Source: Klebsormidium nitens (Eukaryota > Plantae > Klebsormidiophyceae). From it: a stretch of DNA of 64,000 nt. The stretch spans positions 1 through 64,000 of the forward strand of contig DF237411.1 in the NCBI GenBank assembly GCA_000708835.1, read 5' to 3'. The translations under genes and the position numbers were made by a program. Below the pieces are notes generated by a model that was given only the letters and a program-made list of their open reading frames with translations, made no database searches and had not been told where the DNA came from. Shown one piece after another: positions 3,999 to 53,523 of the stretch; position 1 is the stretch's first letter; the number at the start of each line of letters is the position of its first letter.

Positions 3999-5787
3999 TG
4001 GGTTCAATGCTTGTCTGATGCTGCTAGAACGAACCACGTCACAATCAAAGCCCCCATCTCATGGGCTAATAAGAAGGCGAGCTGAAAGCCCGGCTTTTAA
4101 GTTCTTTGAAATAAACGGCGCTCGCGTAGGCTTAGCAAGCGGCAAGCTAGTGACTGGACAAAGTGGTTTGAATTAGTGGTGTTTGTGTAGATTCGACGTA
4201 TCACCGAATTTGCGACTTTGCGGTGAGAAATCGTGCACACTCTCTTGATAGTCAAATATGAGCAGCGACTCGAGGAACCAAATCAAGTGTAACTAGCCGC
4301 GCGCCAATCTCTAGAAAAGACGTGAACGAGTCCGGCCGGAGCTGCAGGCATGCCTCTGCCTGATCATTGCGCAAGCTCACATATAAATAGAGTCATTGCG
4401 TGACGCATGCTTTCGTCGGAAGTGGATTTGCAGCTAGCTACTCCACTGTGCATGGCTACAAGGGGATCTTACACTGCATCATGGCTTGTACGTTCAATGC
4501 GTTCGACGCATCCGGACGGAATGAAGCTGATAATACCAAGCGGCCGCGCGGGGCCTTTCACATCTCCGCTACAGTAAACAATTAAGACAAATGACGGTCT
4601 ACTATATATCATCTTCTGGCCGGGCTCGTCCAACGGATTATCATGTAATACGCTCGCGATCCACCACATGCATCATCGCAAAGGTCTGATCATGTATAAA
4701 GTATCTTCTGCTCATGGCAAGCCTGCTGCACGTGCCAGAAGCTTGCGTGAAATGATAATCACAAGAATTTTCTCAAAGGATCCGGGTCCTCTCGTACGTA
4801 TGAAATTTCAGAGAATCATTTTATCTCAGCCGAGGATAATAATGTAAGCTCCGACATACACGAAACATATGCATTCATCTACAACCCCCGAAGGGCCTGC
4901 CCCGCACCCACAGGGTTTACGTAGACGTGATCATTGAGAGTAAGTGTGGCGTTCAATATCAACGTATTTAGAAGCAATCATTTGCTGGGCAAGGTCTCAC
5001 ATGTAACGTGATTGTGACTCGGCCGTCATTCGACGATGTTTATTCACCACTGAGTATACTCATTCCTCATGCGTGGCCTATCAGTGTTGCAATCCGGTCC
5101 ATCCGACCCATCAACTAATCATTGTTACCGTACGTGGTTGCACTAACAAAATACTAGTCAAGTTAGAGACGGAAGGCAATGCAAGCCCGAAGGAAGCCCA
5201 TCTTGACCTTAACGATGCCTACCATACTTCAGCAGTATCTGTACAACTGTCCACTGACCTTTTAGATCCGCGTTGCAGCACTGCTGACTTCCTATTGACC
5301 TTGAATGCAACACCCCAGCCTTGCTTGCTTTGTTCGCATACTTTACAAGCCCCGTCGATTTGCGGATTGTGCTTCGAAAGATCTGAATAAACTACAACCG
5401 GACTACTGCGTCTTGGCACTACCTTACATTTGACACTGACCGCTCTATTCTAGGGTCAACCTCCAACAACCTCCAACATTTCAAAAATTTTGAATCAGAA
5501 GGTACTTAAATCGTGAAGACCCTAGAGTGAGTGCATTCACTGGAAAATCCATGCGAAGTAGCATTGCCCTTAATACAGTAACTTCCGACCTACTCTTCTA
5601 GACGTTATGCGATACTTGCCATATCTTAGTGGATTAAATGACAGACTACTGTCCCATACACCAAGACAAAGACTCGCGGGCTTCAAAGCTTCTGCGCGCG
5701 CGCTTTGCTGAGTCTGGTAAAACCTGGTAGCTCAAATCAGAGACGCGACCACCGTCTCTACCGGTCAAATTCGTGCGCTCGCGCACC

Positions 5788-8700
5788 CTACTGGTAGAAC
5801 TTGTAGGTGCTCGCGTCCACAATAATGTTACGCAGCGACCCGATGAAGGCGACAATCATTACGCCCACGAAAGTGACGATAATAAACTGCGCGAGGGAAA
5901 GACAGGCTCAGTCTGCCGCCGCTTGAGTATCCTTGAATCAACTCGCAAAATCCTAAGCTGAGAAGGCATAAGTCGATCGAAGGACCGAAACATGGAAGCA
6001 GAAAAACGACGAACACATCCTTGAGAGCGTAAAACGGACTACATGGAAAAGAGACGTCAGCTAACAACGAGAGAGACGGAGTCGAAGATAAGCAAGCTAG
6101 GGAAGGAGCGGGAAACTGGAGCTTTTCGTAATTGCTGCCGGCTCGCACGGTGGCCGGACGAACGATGAGTGCCACTCAACCCGCCCATCGAGCAACCTGC
6201 AAAGCGTGCTTCTCAGCAGCCAAACACAGACATTCGTTCTGGGCACTCCTGACGGCAGAACGAGGGACGAGAGCGGAAGGACGGCAGGATAGCAGCGGAA
6301 ACGGAGAGTGCGCGCGCGCTTACCCAGTTCCAGGCCCAGCTGAAGGAGCCCATCTTTGGTTTGATCAGGACGATCCAAATGATGGCGGGCATCTGAATGA
6401 AAAAGAAAGAGCGGGTCTCAAGGTTGGGAAGAACGGAAAATCATTTACTGATTTTCACCTGTGGGTTTGACGCCGTGTGCAAAATCTCGAGCCGTTTTGA
6501 TCGATTACGGTATTTAGTCGAGTCGACGGTTGGCATTATGGAACGACAATCAGCACAGGGATCGGGAATTCTTACTCAGTCAGCATCAAGGCCCAGATGC
6601 CACGCACGGGCCTTAGAGCCGGTTGCTACTTTTGAATGCTTCAACGAAAGGCTAGAACGGCCGGTTCGGGTCATAGGGTACGTCACGGGATCAAGAGATG
6701 AGCAAAATGTTCGCTCGACAAATCAGGCCAGCGTCAATCTGGCTTGTTGGCAGTACACAAGCCAGGTTTCCAGTGCTAACCCGACGGAAACGAACCAAAC
6801 GCACCTCCGTTGACTGGCTCCCCAAAACCCAGGTTTGACCACAGCCTAAGAGTGCAGCTGAAACGCTCGGCGGTTAAAGTAGAAAGTGACGTCACAGTGG
6901 ATACGACGTCAGTCGCTTAGGAGCATCACCGTCACAAGGTGACGTCACAGTTGAGATGCTTACGAAGAAGGTCATGGGCGCATTCCCGAGCGCTCCCAGC
7001 AGTCCCATCAGGTCGCCAAAGAAGGGGAAGGTAATCGCCAAGAAAGTGGTGCCGACTGCAATGAAAAGAGGGCAATACTTTCATATTTGGAAAACGGTTG
7101 CGTTTGCGTAGAGTAAACATTCAGGGGTCACGGCTTCCTCGAGCACCAGCGACTCGACCATACTCTAAACCACGAGAAACGGGGCCCCTGCTCGTCGGTC
7201 ATATTTCAACGGCGTTCCGGCGGACTTGTACAGAAGTAAGCCCGACTGACGAGCTTCATCTTTTGGGCGATTGGGCGTTCCCCTCGACGCTTCTTCTAGC
7301 TCGCGAAAGTGAGCCAGTCATGATGGACTTGCAATCTGAATTGGATCGACAACGCGGAACCACTGTCCCTTAACACAATTGCTGATGTCAGAAGTTGGAA
7401 AGCTTGACCTCATGTAAACTCCCACCAGTCAAAGACGACACTTCTAGTGGAGAAGCACCTGACGGCTCGAGACGCATCGAAGCGCCATCGACGGCTCTAA
7501 AGCCGTGAAATTTGCAGCGTTAGGTATTTAATCTCTCATCAAAGCTAAGGCGATTCCCAAGCCCTAGTACCATAACTCTAGACTCAAAGATACCCTTTCA
7601 GGAATCTGTTCTTGGAAAATCTGAATCGACTTACGGACGTAGAAGGTCCGGTAAGTGATGCGCATGACGCCGGTGTTGTTGATCCCCTTGCGCAGCATCA
7701 CGGTCTCGATCATGTCAAAGACGGGGTGGGTATAGAGCTGTAAAACCACAAAACAAAACCTGGGTTACTTCAAATGGTTCAACATTCTCTTACTTATTGG
7801 CGAAAAATGCGTAGATACTTTGTTTCAGCCTTCCGCAGCATCACGCTTTCGTTCACGATCAAGAAGGGGTCTGTGAAGAGCTGCAACCCGCAGAATCACT
7901 GATTATGATAAAATGATTTCACACTTTTTACTTAGTACGGAGGATTGCACACGGCAATGAGTAAAGCAATGTACAATAGAAAGCGGAAAGTGCCCAAGCA
8001 AAGTGAGGAACGCGCGCACTTGCTCCCCATGTTGGTCAAGGCATCCAGAAGCATCGATTATGTGCTGATGAAACTTCGACTCAGCACAGACGCCTCACTT
8101 TATGAGTGCAAGACCCCCTTTTAATCGGATCTTGTCAGGATCTGGTCAGCTTTTAGGCGGTGCCATTCCATCCTGGGTACAAATGCGCTTCGACCTGAGA
8201 ACTTTAATCTGCAAAAACGAGGGCCAACCAATTGTTCAAAACGTCCAAACCCACCTGATACGATGCGAACACGTGGACGACCACCATAAGATTCGCCATA
8301 GCGACCACCCAGATCGGCTTCCCGACCGACTTGAGAATGTTGTCCTGGACTAGGTTTCCGAAGGCCCAGTACCCGGTGATTGCGACCGGGAAGTAGCACG
8401 CTGCGACGACGGCATACGCGAAGTAGACGCCCCGCATCATGGGGATCTTGGAAGGGGGAGCGCCCTCCTTGGTAGACGGCATGCTCGACTGCGGAAGAGA
8501 GAACGGCGTGCTTGATTCGACATCGGGAAACGATCGTTTTACCGAAGTCGTTGCACACCAAAGAAGGAAGGGAATCTGCGCTGATCACCGGATGGAGAAA
8601 GAGGATTGACTTTTGTCGGCGTAGAACAGGTTGGCTTGAAGAAGTATCGGGAACCTCCTCTTAGGTTTGAACAGGATGAAAGTGAGTATCGGGCATGGTT

Positions 8701-11700
8701 GTCTTGCAAAGGATCATGATAAGAGAAGTTGGGTTGTCATTCCGAAGTCAGGCCGTTGCTGAGCTAAGCAAGGTGATCACGGTGGCTCAACACAATGCGA
8801 AGGGGTCAACAAAAATGTTTAATAGAACCGCAAAAGAATTTCACAAGCGGGTCCGACAAAAGCGACCCGGCTGACGAAGCGAATATAACTGTTAGAGGAC
8901 AGAAACGAGTTTCGATACCGAAACCGAAAGCAGGAACGTCCATAGTAGGCCTTAGAAAAGGGGGAAACAAATGACGACTTGGGCTGATGCAAGAGCTGAA
9001 ATGAACTCCGGCTTAACAAGTTTCGGCAAACAAGCTCGCTAACCTGGATTTCCAGAACCACGTTGTGCCCCCCGTAGGCGAAGCAAACGGTGCCCAGAGC
9101 GTTGAAGACGTTGAAAACGACGTCAGCAGTGGTGTGGCCCTTGAGGTTGTACTCAACCCCGGGCTGCTTTCCGACGTTGAGTGACGTGGCAAACGCAATC
9201 GTGGAATAGCTGCGAACAGAAGGGAGGGCTCTTGGTCATGATGGGTCTTAAAGATGTTCAATTCATGAAGTAAGCGCTCTTGAACCCAAACCACTCGGGC
9301 AACGCTGATCTCAAGCAACAGCCTCGGGTTCAGAAGCTCTTCGCGAACCGACCGGGTTTTGAGAAGGGTTTGAGGAACCGGTGCGAGAAAGATTAAAGGG
9401 TGGGTCTTAGCAGTTGAAGTGCAAACAGGTCAAAGGAGCGGGGTTGCTAACGGGTCAAAGAAGATGGTCTAAGAACCAGGTATGGAAACCAGATCTCGAG
9501 AGGCCAGACGGGAGTCTGCGGCCTCACCTGAGGGACATGACCGCGCCCATGAACGAGATCGCTGACAGTGCGTTGAAGTTGGGAAGCTGCGAAGGGACCA
9601 AACGACACGTGTCAGTTTCTCGGGTCCACCTCTCGTGCGAAGCTTTCCTGGCAATCACGCCGATCGCTCTGCTTCTCTGCTTAGTTGTCAATTCCAAGTC
9701 TTTCCCAGATGTGCTCGATAATCAAGACACGTCCACAGGCGAACACTAGATCCGAACTCAAAAGAGGGGGTAAGAGACAGAGGTTTGCAGAACGGGGGTA
9801 CGAGTTCGGGATCGAGAATCAGGGTTGAAGTGCTGGATTTGGGAAACATGGTTAATAATTGGGGTTTGCGTCTTACCTGTGCGGCGAGCAGGTGCGGCGC
9901 CGAGAAAATGAGGATCCACCAAGTCTCCCTCAATTCGGGTTTGCAAACCTGTACCCCGCCCTTGATCTGGTGGCTGGTGCAAACCAGTTCGTAGAAGCGC
10001 TGCAGGGACTGGCCACCGGTAACCGAGTAGGTGACGCCTAACCCGACCATGACACACAGCTGCCAGGGCACCGTGAGCCACAGGCCGAGCTTGGGACCTG
10101 TGTCAAGAGGAGGTTGAGAGGATCAGAAGATGGTCGAAAGTTTTTCCGTCCGCCGATTTCTTGTTCGAATGGGGCACTCAAAGGTGGACACATGGACTAA
10201 TGTACGTGCAAGTGGCCAGACCTCGGATCTGGCAAAAAATGCAAACCGCTATCCAAGAAACGCTCGCAGGGGAGCTCCAAAAACACATGTCGAATCAGCG
10301 ATTCTGGCGGCTTATGAGAGCGTCTAGGGCGGGACGCTTTCGTGAGTAGTAATCCGAGGAGGACTCCTGACTTGACAGTAGTCGGGCAGAAGAAGCATCT
10401 AATGGGTATGCACGACTGAAGGTCAAAGCAATGGACAGTTAGCAACAAGAAACGACAGCGCAGGAACCAGCACCAGAAATATAACAGAAGAGGGAAAATT
10501 TGAGACGGTCGATTTGAGTACGTGCAGCAAAGCGCAGTTGCGTCAGAGAAGACCTGGACCTCAAAGTGCTCAATCTGAAGTCTGAACCGACTTGCTTGAG
10601 AAAGAGGAGATGATAATCGTGCCACTGAAGGAATATCAGCTTCAGATCACTGTTAGAGCGGCTCGAGACCATTTTGGGACGAAGAGACTCCAGCCCGTGT
10701 AAATAGGATCAAGTGGCATGCCAAAGGGAGTCGAACCGGAATGGTAGAAACAGTGAACTTCAGATCGAACCAGGAGACGCTAGAGCTGCCCAGCATATCA
10801 AAGGTGCAGGGCGGGGTTGAGAATCCGGAAAAGCATTCTCCACAAAGCAAGCAGCGTATGACGGCGGGAGAGAAACTTGGCAACACACTAGAAAGCAAGC
10901 CCAGGGGTTCAAATCTGTGCTAGGAGCGGTTCGGGAAAAGCCTTTGCTCAGCCTGGGACAAATAGGAACTCACCGAACGCATATTGGCCCAGCTCGTGGT
11001 AGCGGTTGAAGCGGCGCCCGGGCACGAACTCGTGCAAGTAGACGAGCTGCCACAGCGTGTAGAGCGTCACTATAAAGGACAGCGTTAGCACGATGGTGCC
11101 GCCGGGCCTGAAGAGGGTTAAGGAAAGGGTTTTAAAAAAGAGGTTAAGGGAAGGGTTAGCAGGAAAACACACTGAGACGTGTCTTTAAGAAAGCGTGCAG
11201 AGGGTTTCCATCAAGGATAGAGTCAGCACCATGGTTCTGGCGGGTCGAATTAGGGTTAAGGAATAGAATAGAAAAAATAAAAAAAGAATAGAACAAGTTG
11301 CTAAGACGAGTTTATTACTGCTTTCGACAGAATGTTGGCACTTGATACTGATCGAGCTCATGACATTTACCCTAAAAATGTAGCTTGAAGTGACCCTTGA
11401 GAGCTTTCCCTGTCCGTTCCGTTTTACAACACTGTGTGATCCAGCTTCTTACACCAGGTCTGAATGAGTAGGCGCACTGAAATGAGTCAGATTGCACCTG
11501 ATCTCTTCACCGCTGACCGACAGAAAACAGTTTATCTTACAAACCTGAAAACTCAAGAAAGACACCGGTGATTGACTGCAAGATATAACACAACTGAAAG
11601 CTTACCACTCAAGGTACTTGAAAGCGTAGGGCAGCCCCAGAACTCCTGCCCCGACCATGGCAGTGACATTGTGGAATGCGGAGTAGTACCACTTGGCGGT

Positions 11701-38991: not shown

Positions 38992-40008
38992 GACGGTTTT
39001 TCCCTCAGCGGGCAACTTGCCAAATGCGCTGTGGTACCTGATGCCAATATTCCTAAAGCCTAAAGGTCAAAACGAGGCCATGCCAGCTCCAGCGCCAAGT
39101 TCGCGTAGTTACTGTTTTACTAGTGTACCGAAGGTAGAAAATTGGAAGAGAAGCCTGCTTCAAACTGGCAGTCAGAACCAATCCCAGTCTTGCAAGTTGC
39201 AGCTGGAGGTCCACGTGATACACGTGGGGCCTGGGCTGGTCGGGACAGTACACACGGACCCTGCCCCCGGGCCCACTGGGACACTAGCACAGTGACCGGT
39301 TGAAATCGATCGGGACGCCGTCCCTGGGCCAGATCGATCTTCGTCTATGGCGTCGCTTCCACAATTAAGCGTTTATAGAATGCATGATGCCCTGCGCGAC
39401 AAGCACCCAGCATGACGCACTTCGTAGTGCAGTAGAGGCAGACTTGAGAGAGGTTTGTGAAGGAGGCCGCCCTATTCTTCTCCTGTCCCGCTCAGGCGGT
39501 GCATGTGGCAATAGTAAGTCCTTACACTAGTGAATGACATGGGTTGGAGCAAGATTAACGCCACGATCCTGGTGTTAGATCATCATAGTTCCTGGGTGCT
39601 GCAAACACCTCCAGGCGAAGAGGGCTAATCGAATGATGTACGTTCAGATTGAGAGTCAACTAATGTTGAGAACGATTCGAAGCAGCATACGTCAATCGAG
39701 CTGGCAACAATCAGTCCCTAAATTAGCAGGTTAGCAAACAAGGAAGCATCTTTTCCATGACGAGATCACGAAACACGTTCCAAATATGCTGATCAAGCAT
39801 CCCCAGGACTGTTGGGTCCCGTACACATGTCACGTCGCAAAGTGTCGATGTTTCAATCAGGAAACCATGCGATGATTTCCGGTCTGCCTCCGGATTTCAC
39901 TGTGCAGCAAAACTTGAAAGGCGAAGAAGTGGTGGGGACGAGGACAACGGACTTCGCACGCTTGATTTACGTGCGTTCACGGAATTTCCAACCCGCTGGG
40001 CACTGCGC

Positions 40009-41439
40009 CTAAAGAACCGGTAGATTGCTCAGACTTGCATGGAGAGGGCCCCAGCTTTTCAATGTCGCCTGGAGAGATTGCAAACAACTTTTTTCTAGGC
40101 GCCTTAAAGTGTGCAATCGGCCATCGGTGCAATTGAGAATTACCAAGGGCCGTACCATCGACAACCGCTGCGTATCTGCATCCCAAAGCACCCCCACCGC
40201 CTCCCAAAAAGGCACCAGAACCTCTTCAACTTTGTGCGCAAAGTCTGGTATTGGTTCTGGGCCCGTTATTTGCTTGAGCCTGACGACGTGGGCCTTGGCA
40301 CCGAAGCGGCAAAGGGGTGCACAATCATTTGGTGTTAACATTGTGCAACGGACCGGCACAAAAAATGAGCAGACCGCTGATGCAGATTCGATGCACTTTG
40401 AGTACGCACATTTGTGGGGTTGAATGGGCACCAGACTTGACCGCACCAAGTCGATACTGATCCATGCATCAACGGTCCTCATAAGTAACTCGATCCTGTT
40501 GCAATATATTCAAAGCAGCAATTTCGTGCTGGTTCTGCACCACTGATCACCTCGTCGTTGCAAACTGAGTTGTTTCTCTCCTTCAAAAAGCACCGCTGCC
40601 CACGAGACAATGTTAAAAGCTTCCGACCAAAGCAGGCTGATAAACACACCAAAATTTGCACGCAGGTTTTGTAAACCCTTTCGAGATGAATCTGGTAACT
40701 GGATTGTGGAGGAGTCACCAAACCACCAGAATAATCTCTGCAAGATCCATTTTTATGCCGACCTTGATCTGCGTGGGCTGCTCAAACCAGCCTCATCGAT
40801 GGTGAGTTTGGGCTGAGCAAAAAAAGGTACACAGAAGTCGGTGACACACATCATCACAGCTGCCCCGAGTCTTTTTTTCAAGGTAAGATGTTGAAAGCCG
40901 CGGAGCACACTGTATGATTTCTGCTTGTCTGCTTTTGGGGCCAAACTCGCGATTACAACCATTCTGCATGATACTGAACGGTGAAAGTTAGCTTCGAAGG
41001 CCTTCCCGCTCAAATGTGGACAAAAAGCTTGCTGTGAAGCTTCGCCAAACCAGCTGACGATGTCAAAGCTGCCCAAATTAGTGATTCAACAAATTTCAAA
41101 ATATTCAAGAATAAGTGGCACGAGGAATGGCAACTTCGAAACCAGTCGACTTGGAACACCTATTCTTTCATTGGAGTGGCCCATATGCATCTCGCAGGCA
41201 CGAGATTCTCGTCCTCGAAATGCGATAAAAAGGGAGAGTCCGATGTAGTAGCTGCCATTGCAAGGCAGAACTGTACTTCGCGCTTGCAAGGTGACATAAG
41301 AGCTGTATCGAAGCCACTGATACGATAGAAGAGTCTTCGGCTCTGTCGAAGCCACAGAGCCTGAAGCCTTTCTCACATTGAACCCAAGCGCCCAGCTCAC
41401 ATTGAGACAGTCTTTTGAATGTGGGTAGCGGGCACTCAT
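40009..41439 (-). pseudogene. Decayed intronless reading frame of about 475 codons with three in-frame stops; family unidentified
   Basis: ORF-track pieces 41439-41086, 41076-40753, 40743-40510 and 40482-40009 are all in the same frame, each separated by a single stop (TGA, TAA, TGA). Confidence 0.35.
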
Positions 41440-41835
41440 CCACCCGCTTCAATGACTGAATCTCGTGCTCGATGGATGCGAGTACTCCCCGAACCATCGA
41501 CCACAAGTGGTTGATGACACCTACGATCCATGTTGGCGACAAGCACATTGGGACGCTCTGGGTCACTCGAACAGATTGGAAGCTCCTTCCGACCTGAGTC
41601 TATCCCGCACTCATGTTGCCACTTCATAGGAAAGTCAGGGCTGCATTTTGAAGCAGGCTACCAGTGCACCGGAGCAGAGGGTTGCGACGTTCGCAGCCGC
41701 TTGGACGCTAGAAGCTCGCTCCCCACCGTTCAAAGCTCGATCGACGGCGGATCTTAATGGCACCTGACCCACAAAATCCAAGATCCGGACTCGCGGTGTT
41801 TACATACTCGAGCATCCACCCGTCGTGCATGAAAT

Positions 41836-42110
41836 GGGGCTGTAGCTCAATTGGCAGAGCGCTGGAGCAAGTCTTGGGGAAGGATCGCGCTTTGACCCGC
41901 GTGTGTAGATCGGCCGTGAGCCGCGTGTGATGATTGGCCTTTGAGCCATGTGTGATTAGGGGATTATTGGCCTTGAGCCATGTGTGGTTAGGGGGGATTA
42001 TCGGCCTTTGAGCCGCGTTTGGTGATCGGCCTTTGAGCCGCGTAGGTCTAGGTTCAGGCTTTGACCCGCTTGCTTAACCGGAGATGCGGGTTCGAAGCCC
42101 GCCAGCCCCA
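41836..42110 (+). tRNA. tRNA-like gene or pseudogene with a 205-nt insert in the anticodon arm; isotype unclear
   Basis: Acceptor stem GGGGCTG(41836-42)/CAGCCCC(42103-09), 7/7 paired, discriminator A. D arm GCTC-AATTGGCA-GAGC (A-box). T arm GCGGG-TTCGAAG-CCCGC (B-box). Anticodon stem CTGG/CCGG. AGCAAG(41866-71) pairs with CTTGCT(42069-74) beside a 3-nt TAA bulge. Anticodon loop bases are non-canonical (no U33). Confidence 0.7.
41883..42069 (+). repeat. About 7 degenerate tandem units (consensus GATCGGCCTTTGAGCCGCGTGTG), each a small hairpin with a CTTTGA-type loop
   Basis: Cores: gcgctttgacccgc, cggccgtgagccg, tggcctttgagcca, tggccttgagcca, cggcctttgagccg (x2), aggctttgacccgc. Confidence 0.85.
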
Positions 42111-42116
42111 CACAGC

Positions 42117-42121
42117 TTTTT
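42117..42121 (+). terminator. Pol III oligo(T) terminator
   Basis: TTTTT starting 7 nt after the discriminator base of the tRNA-like gene. Confidence 0.55.
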
Positions 42122-43369
42122 GGAACCGTAAGAAAAGATGCATGTGCCCAAGCAAGGTGCTTGTTGAACGGTCGACGCTTGACAAAGAAAATGAAACACA
42201 TGCATGCCCGGGTGAAGCGCCCAGGTCCTGAAGGGGGCAAAGCCGCAGGGGGAAGATCGATTGGCTTCTCCTATCCCTGGCAGTTCATTCATGTCAGGCT
42301 GACTATATCGGTTTGTGTACTTGGTCATGTCCATGGGACGTCTAGAAATTTGGACTAAGCTTGTCAGCTCCACGGTCGCGCAGGCCTGTGAAACATGATC
42401 CAATGCTCCGATGCACCGATCGATTGGCAGCGGGCCTGCACTTCTTCATAACATCCTTCGAAACATGCATGACCACCTCAGCCGCCCATGAAAACCTTTT
42501 TGCGACAGATTGACTTGCCATTTTGACCATTGGCCGTCGATATCCTGCATGTGCCCCGCGTCGGAGTGGCGGACATTATCGTTTCTGGCCAATCGAATCC
42601 AGCATGTGGCACTGATCGTATGAATTGTGATTGCCAGTGGCATGGCAGACATATAATCTGCATTGCGACTGTGCTTCATGTGTTATATCAAAGTACTCAG
42701 CATATAATATCAGTGCGCATGCATGCAATTCCACTGCGGGGCCCTGCATCGTACGAAATTGGTTACCGTAAACAATGATATCCGACATGATCACCCGTGT
42801 TAGTATGTTAATTCTACAACCAATCATTAGGACTCGACGATCAGCAGCCTTCCATTTCAATTCACGCAGGCTAGATTTGAGTGACCTGCTTGCGGCATAC
42901 ATCATGCAGTGCATGGTCGAATACATATGGCCTCGAACTGGGTACGCGAACATGCAGATCCGCAACTCGATCGAATTGGCGCCACCCGCCTCGGATCTAT
43001 GTGCTGGCACATGATGGTCATGCATCATCATGCATGCGCATTGACAAGCAACCGTCCGTTTGCCAAGTCTTCAGTGGGGACTCGAAGCGGCTGAGCTCAA
43101 CTGCATTGAAGCGCGGCCATGATGCGCCTATTACTATGTACATGCTGGGAGTTAACTTGGGTTCATCTCGTCATACTTCCACGGAAATGTTGGTCAACTG
43201 GGAGCGCTCAGCATCCGCCATGAACGCACTAGATGTGGCCGCCACGAGTGGATGTGAAGATTCACCGCTTGCGAAATTGTTCCATTGCGGACAGATCAAC
43301 AAGGTAGCATGCACTGCCTGGTTGGGGGCGGTCTCGACTCTCTTATTGCGGCATCTATACAAGCCAACC

Positions 43370-53523
<10,154 letters not shown>

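Follow-up and report, generated by a model that had tools for sequence, protein, structure and literature searches.

A split tRNA body enclosing a degenerate minisatellite in Klebsormidium nitens: a candidate Pol III-type gene for a non-decoding tRNA-framed RNA

Two tRNA halves at 41836-42110 of a 64,000-nucleotide stretch of Klebsormidium nitens DNA (hereafter the window) enclose approximately 200 nt, as is evident from direct reading of the sequence. The insert is a degenerate minisatellite, and it sits at the end of a long helix that replaces the anticodon arm. We give about even chances to the view that the locus is a stand-alone Pol III-type gene for a non-decoding, tRNA-framed RNA with an unconstrained, slippage-expanded arm. 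The observations on which this assessment draws are the anatomy, signals, fold and repeat structure of the locus and its partial conservation in one relative; transcription and end processing of the element, and any function it may have, we infer from them.

Results

Structure and recognition of the tRNA body

The window has the character of nuclear eukaryotic DNA, with a G+C content of about 51% and spliced genes; its compositional outlier is the segment 26001-28000 (G+C 0.59, GC skew -0.23). The element lies on the plus strand and consists of the following parts:

41836-41842, plus strand: acceptor stem, 5' strand (tRNA positions 1-7), Watson-Crick paired with 42103-42109 at 7/7 positions, pair probability 0.88-1.0
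41843-41854, plus strand: A-box-like element TAGCTCAATTGG, which fits the pattern TRGCNNA-N(1-3)-GG and overlaps U8 to G19 of the D arm
41845-41860, plus strand: D arm with a 4-bp stem (41845-48/41857-60) and an 8-nt loop, stem pair probability 0.76
41862-41871, plus strand: extended 'anticodon' helix, 5' strand (CTGG followed by AGCAAG), paired with 42078-81 and 42069-74, probability 0.63-0.67
41872-42068, plus strand: insert, a degenerate minisatellite of seven 24-35-nt units with the core CGGCCTTTGAGCCGCG (TRF periods 24 and 32; repeat families D1 and D2)
42069-42081, plus strand: extended helix, 3' strand (CTTGCT, 3-nt bulge TAA, CCGG), from reading and fold
42082-42085, plus strand: variable loop AGAT, short (class I), by direct reading, with G45, A44 opposite G26 and U48 opposite A15
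42086-42102, plus strand: T arm with a 5-bp stem (42086-90/42098-102), the loop TTCGAAG and the B box GGTTCGAAGCC at 42089-42099
42103-42110, plus strand: acceptor stem, 3' strand, with C70 at 42105, and discriminator A73 (A42110)
42117-42121, plus strand: T5 run, Pol III terminator-like, beginning 7 nt past the discriminator

The acceptor, D and T stems are Watson-Crick paired in 16/16 positions, and the approximately 12 invariant nucleotides and all core tertiary nucleotides are intact. U8 and A9 are both present, the D loop AATTGGCA supplies A14, G18, G19 and A21, G26 is present with A44 of the variable loop opposite it, and the T loop supplies T54, T55, C56, R57 and A58 next to the pair G53-C61. 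In the acceptor stem, the pair at 3:70 is G3:C70. When the 275-nt RNA was folded without constraints, the cloverleaf stems and the 10-bp helix that carries the insert all formed, with probabilities of 0.63-1.0.

With default settings ARAGORN reported no tRNA and no tmRNA in the window. When introns were allowed, it made a single call in the 64 kb, at this locus, and 30 shuffled windows treated in the same way gave 1 call in total; therefore, the split tRNA body is real and well beyond chance, and we regard it as confirmed at 41836-42110. Searching for a known family with Rfam gave no match at gathering score in the whole window or in the contig L018 of a distant relative described below, and neither a group I intron nor a snoRNA was found. 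Extending that search to E values up to 10 added two chance-level matches only (a lncRNA and a permuted tmRNA). Default ARAGORN and Rfam are blind to the locus because the insert is too long. Among 414 in-silico joins of the two halves, ARAGORN recognised a tRNA body in 235, and the anticodon that it assigned shifted with the join chosen (Leu, Ser, Asp, Val, Lys and others).

The 26-nt 5' half is letter-identical to true bacterial tRNA 5' halves, namely those of 17 ordinary tRNA genes found in a scan of JGI metagenomes. Thirteen of these encode tRNA-Ala, with the acceptor 3' strand ...CAGCTCCA, and three encode tRNA-Trp, with ...CAGCCCC. All 13 tRNA-Ala genes carry T (U70) at the position equivalent to 42105, where the element has C, and the alanine identity pair G3:U70 is thus absent from the element. 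The matches to this 26-mer in the JGI metagenomes were ordinary bacterial tRNAs only, with no orthologue of the element, and a 22-mer across the junction had 0 matches in the same collection. Neither tRNA half has a second copy within the 64-kb window.

Pol III signals

The sequence features of a Pol III type 2 gene are present, that is, an A box, a B box and a nearby downstream oligo(T). The B box GGTTCGAAGCC is the sole perfect B-box match on the plus strand of the window; a minus-strand match at 10727 was dismissed as chance, with no tRNA-like context there. A T5 run lies within 12 nt downstream of only 1.3% of random window positions. The lack of any TTTT inside the element is not significant, as 40% of equal-length windows are also free of TTTT. 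The original prediction of an intact tRNA scaffold with A box, B box and oligo(T) terminator was thus borne out by the 16 stem pairs, the ARAGORN intron call and the T5 run 7 nt past the discriminator. Its estimate of about 240 nt between the boxes was close to the measured distance of about 235 bp, which is unusually long; in human tRNA genes of the ordinary kind the two boxes are 30-67 bp apart (PMC11811891).

The extended helix and the question of splicing

The border helix of the insert is formed by CTGG/CCGG and AGCAAG/CTTGCT, which together give 10 bp with TAA bulged on the 3' strand. Such borders recall a eukaryotic pre-tRNA, and an intron-bearing tRNA-type gene is accordingly one reading of the locus, although in our judgement an unlikely one: the tRNA splicing endonuclease would cut after 41872 and after 42075, and the real product would be the released repeat RNA of 203 nt, whether linear or circular, with a 72-nt odd tRNA beside it. 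In fly and human pre-tRNAs a 3-nt bulge lies at the 3' cut, and the proximal pair at nt 32 is followed by 6 nt to the end of exon 1 (10.1101/497545). The element fits this geometry with G41867-C42073 as the proximal pair, 42074-42076 as the bulge and 41872 as the end of exon 1, so that the two cuts named above are those which the pre-tRNA geometry predicts. The bulge, the proximal pair and the 6-nt rule thus uphold the pre-tRNA-like borders that had been proposed for the insert, and the proposed cut sites (after 41871 and 42076) are each shifted by one base. In the MFE fold an unpaired 3-nt CTT follows directly on the predicted 5' cut, and about 34% of the tRNA genes of Klebsormidium nitens have introns (PMC13578239), which also agrees with such a reading.

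Several features speak against it. The anticodon-intron helix of the element has 6-7 strong pairs, and tight helices of this kind impaired splicing in a reporter study (10.1101/497545). The longest algal tRNA introns quoted are about 64 nt, far below the 203 nt found here, and streptophyte algae are said to retain canonical introns only (PMC13578239). In standard numbering, positions 27-31 are CTGGA and positions 39-43 are ACCGG, which leaves an A-A mismatch at 31x39. Excision at the canonical 37/38 position would give the loop GCAAGTA, with C33, U37 and the anticodon AAG (Leu); the body, with its variable loop of 4 nt, is class I. The contigs of three RNA sequencing runs, none of which cover the locus, contained neither a splice joint nor a spliced product. 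Ligation in tRNA splicing in plants follows the yeast-type route, from which stable intron circles are not known, and ligation into circles is not known in the plant lineage. Finally, the repeats bear no sign of constraint, as described below.

A decoding tRNA with an intron was ruled out by C33, U37, the A31xA39 mismatch and the Leu anticodon on a class I body, in line with the earlier expectation that a spliced product would be odd or non-decoding. Judged from its nucleotide sequence, the element cannot decode, and G3:C70 rules out alanine identity; with G3:C70 in place and the anticodon loop missing, the RNA would therefore be neither charged with alanine nor able to decode.

The insert is a degenerate minisatellite

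Head-to-tail units make up the whole insert, each consisting of the core CGGCCTTTGAGCCGCG and a spacer related to TGTGATGAT. The unit anchors GA[GC]CC lie at 41894, 41918, 41943, 41975, 42010, 42035 and 42063, with a spacing of 24-35 nt, and the insert has the properties of a minisatellite, namely head-to-tail units of 10-100 nt that are diverged and variable in length. The cores of units 5 and 6 are identical, units 3 and 4 form a sister pair (32-nt period, 87% matches), and units 1 and 7 bear GACCCGC and blend into the arm. The repeat cores differ by about 14% from their consensus, whereas the tRNA frame is without any defect, and divergence is alike in core and spacer. Elsewhere in the window the core word did not occur, except for one chance match with 1 mismatch at 6609.

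The original prediction had seen about seven repeated hairpins here and had suggested the insert itself as payload, a hairpin array acting like a protein sponge. The number of units stands, and the hairpin display is not supported. Stems within single units are 4-5 bp long, with -4 to -6 kcal/mol, and are no better than those of shuffled sequences; only 2/7 unit hairpins form in the ensemble of the whole RNA (P 0.27 and 0.69), in which the array folds back on itself. The z-score of the whole 275-nt molecule is only -1.84, and 9/200 shuffles fold as well.

The paired change from CGGC..GCCG to TGGC..GCCA is confined to the sister units 3 and 4 and is therefore a single event. These two units have lost every CpG, including a third one, outside the stem, which became TpG. 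As the CpG loss extends outside the stem, CpG decay explains the paired change better than compensatory selection does, and the caveat already attached to the prediction, that CpG deamination could produce such pairs, proved apt. A hairpin array supported by covariation was accordingly rejected on the shuffle-like stems, the single paired change and the CpG loss beyond the stem. We saw no evidence that the repeats are under selection, whether in the comparison of core and spacer divergence, in hairpin stability or in the CpG pattern. When the array was collapsed in silico to one unit, the result was a 106-nt cloverleaf with one long arm, the arm again being shuffle-like (z -0.8). On this model, the one-unit form is a plausible ancestral state of the array.

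Genomic surroundings

The nearest transcript belongs to a spliced gene on the opposite strand, the last exon of which ends at about 43240:

43240-51866, minus strand: ubiquitin-specific protease gene, from RNA contigs and from the Pfam domains UCH and DUSP in a relative

The last two introns of the protease gene are at 43578-43993 and 44159-44612. RNA contigs of low depth also cross the intron 43578-43993, which indicates that some RNA of the protease gene is unspliced. The element is intergenic, about 1.1 kb beyond the 3' end of the protease gene and convergent with it, and in the contigs of the three RNA runs no host transcript encloses it. Just downstream of the element, in 42138-42556, an RY-like word, ACATGCATG / TGCATGTGCCC, occurs in four copies (42139, 42198, 42463 and 42546).

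These surroundings bear on whether the locus could stem from a mobile element of tRNA origin, such as a SINE or MITE, or from transposon insertion into a tRNA gene, an origin that we hold to be highly improbable. SINEs typically have tRNA-like Pol III heads, the borders of the insert form a 6-bp inverted repeat (AGCAAG/CTTGCT), and a near-identical 5' half occurs elsewhere in a related strain (run X11, below), all of which would suit such an origin. In conflict with it, the tRNA 3' half closes the element, unlike the architecture of a SINE, and the insert consists entirely of local tandem units with no foreign sequence. A search around the element found no flanking direct or inverted repeats, no target-site duplication, no longer terminal repeat and no coding flank. 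The flanking ORFs contain no Pfam domains, and the spurious ORF 42074-42403 gave no match as a query. Within 64 kb, neither half nor the repeat core has a second copy. A SINE, MITE or LTR context was ruled out on the lack of flanking repeats and of Pfam domains in the flanking ORFs, and a tRNA-derived SINE on the split tRNA with its 3' half at the end, the single copy in 64 kb and the lack of target-site duplications, which had been named in advance as the mark of a SINE.

Transcripts and relatives

No RNA run was found to contain the element. Two RNA runs of the same strain gave contigs 100% alike to the window. The contigs of the three runs leave 39200-43239 uncovered, and with it the element; contigs show presence and not absence, and their lack is least telling for a structured, non-polyadenylated RNA.

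A relative of the alga in a soil metagenome from another study yielded a 151-nt contig that aligns to 41784-41933 with 6 differences and no gap (96%). This relative already has the first two units along with the 5' half and the flank 5' of it, and from the gapless 96% match it follows that the first units predate that split. Over the upstream non-coding flank, 41533-41683, a contig of the same metagenome is about 90% identical, with 12 differences and a 3-nt deletion. By these counts (6 versus 12 differences, which are small numbers), 41784-41933 appears somewhat better kept than the flank.

In the related-strain run X11, which has the same species label and is 88-95% alike to the window, a 3106-nt RNA contig (depth 322) carries a near-identical tRNA 5' half (33 nt, 41830-41862, 2 differences) followed by unlike, non-tRNA sequence. 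As far as can be read from its sequence, this contig is a paralogue of the same build, with a tRNA half and an insert inside a long RNA. It would thus provide evidence, independent of the element, that the group possesses and transcribes tRNA halves of this kind around foreign RNA.

The 50.9-kb contig L018 of a distant relative is collinear with the protease gene only (window 43373-51866) and not past the gene end. It contains no tRNA-like element, and as collinearity is lost beyond the protease gene this has no bearing on conservation. Beside the exons in L018 there are short second matches to protease exon ends (4966-5016, 5540-5632 and 10329-10372), which we describe as exon-end echoes.

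Discussion

Considering the above results, we propose the following model for the locus. The tRNA frame would serve as an internal promoter through its A and B boxes, would present the shape needed for end trimming by RNase P and RNase Z at 41836 and after 42110, and would give the RNA a stable core. In place of the anticodon arm, the 10-bp helix with its 3-nt bulge would support a long arm that points away from the frame. Tandem duplication may have lengthened the tip of that arm from about one unit to seven, and the tip may now be decaying freely; on these grounds the repeats would be tolerated filler and not a selected display of hairpins. Judged by its architecture, the element is probably a diverged, non-alanine member of an undescribed, lineage-specific group of tRNA-framed RNAs.

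The main alternative to a living gene is a dead relic, in which the anticodon arm of a tRNA or tRNA-framed gene was overrun by a minisatellite and the locus is now silent and drifting, the frame being intact for want of time. We consider this a possible explanation, though a less probable one than the gene just described. The frame is free of defects in its 16 stem pairs, in about 12 invariant nucleotides and across the 10-bp helix, compared with about 14% divergence between sister units; the RNA folds spontaneously; the terminator is retained in the right place; and the soil relative keeps 96% identity over the 5' part of the element against about 90% in the flank. This flawless frame beside units diverged by about 14%, together with terminator, fold and partial conservation, argues for a living gene. 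Pointing towards a relic, the locus is without an RNA contig in three runs, the insert is a typical degenerate minisatellite of neutral appearance, with length-variable units and CpG loss in two of them, and neither the unit hairpins nor the whole fold is better than shuffles. Moreover, the element is present in one copy in the window, it has no alanine pair, and G3:C70 might have arisen as an alanine-type frame decayed. The distance of about 235 bp between the boxes is a further point against a living gene. The intactness of the frame is itself weakly significant, as at 2-5% divergence it would occur by chance with a probability of roughly 0.1-0.4.

A more elaborate design can be imagined, in which the frame recruits Pol III and the end-processing and splicing enzymes of tRNAs and releases a 203-nt linear or circular RNA, the seven GGCCUUUGAGCC docking sites of which titrate an RNA-binding protein, with slippage tuning the number of units. 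We judge it very improbable.

Several known systems have features in common with the element. In intron-containing nuclear pre-tRNA genes, including the sources of animal tricRNAs, an insertion in the anticodon arm likewise splits a full tRNA body, the A and B boxes are internal and an oligo(T) ends the gene; the 3' border carries a 3-nt bulge, and nt 32 takes part in a proximal pair. They differ in that known introns are tens of nucleotides long and the insert of the element is 203 nt, and in that the element has a helix of 6-7 strong pairs and no canonical anticodon loop (C33, U37, A31xA39). The engineered 'tRNA scaffold' for recombinant RNA, in which a cargo RNA takes the place of the anticodon stem-loop, has an identical topology, with the cargo placed on the anticodon stem and the tRNA body providing for processing and stability. 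The scaffold is of laboratory origin, whereas the element is natural, carries a cargo that shows no constraint and is a mere candidate for expression.

Transfer RNA-derived SINEs and the BC1/ID RNAs, which are Pol III RNAs derived from tRNA-Ala, resemble the element in a tRNA-Ala-like 5' sequence, in A and B boxes and in being non-decoding. In these RNAs, however, the tRNA-like part forms one continuous stretch at the 5' end and no longer folds into a cloverleaf, whereas the element has halves 200 nt apart, a perfect cloverleaf and no marks of retroposition. The tmRNAs, including permuted forms, share with the element acceptor and T arms that close around a large middle part. In contrast to them, the element has a full D arm, no G3:U70, no tag reading frame and a eukaryotic nuclear context. 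A tmRNA was therefore rejected; the permuted tmRNA model scored 10.6 bits (E = 7), below its gathering score of 47, and ARAGORN found no tmRNA. PlantRNA mentions only a mixed group of "tRNA-like" sequences with no known function (10.1101/2021.12.21.473619), and we found no paper on tRNA bodies with inserts of 100-1000 nt in streptophyte algae.

If the locus is silent, it would be a tidy case of a minisatellite invading a tRNA-type gene, and also a caution that CpG decay by itself can produce paired C-G to T-A changes in repeats. If it is transcribed, it would add a non-alanine, repeat-bearing member to a seemingly undescribed group of tRNA-framed RNAs in a streptophyte alga. It would then follow that a natural tRNA body can be promoter, processing handle and stabiliser for an unrelated RNA, as in the laboratory "tRNA scaffold", that its arm tolerates free growth through tandem duplication, and that in this lineage TFIIIC can reach from A box to B box across about 235 bp.
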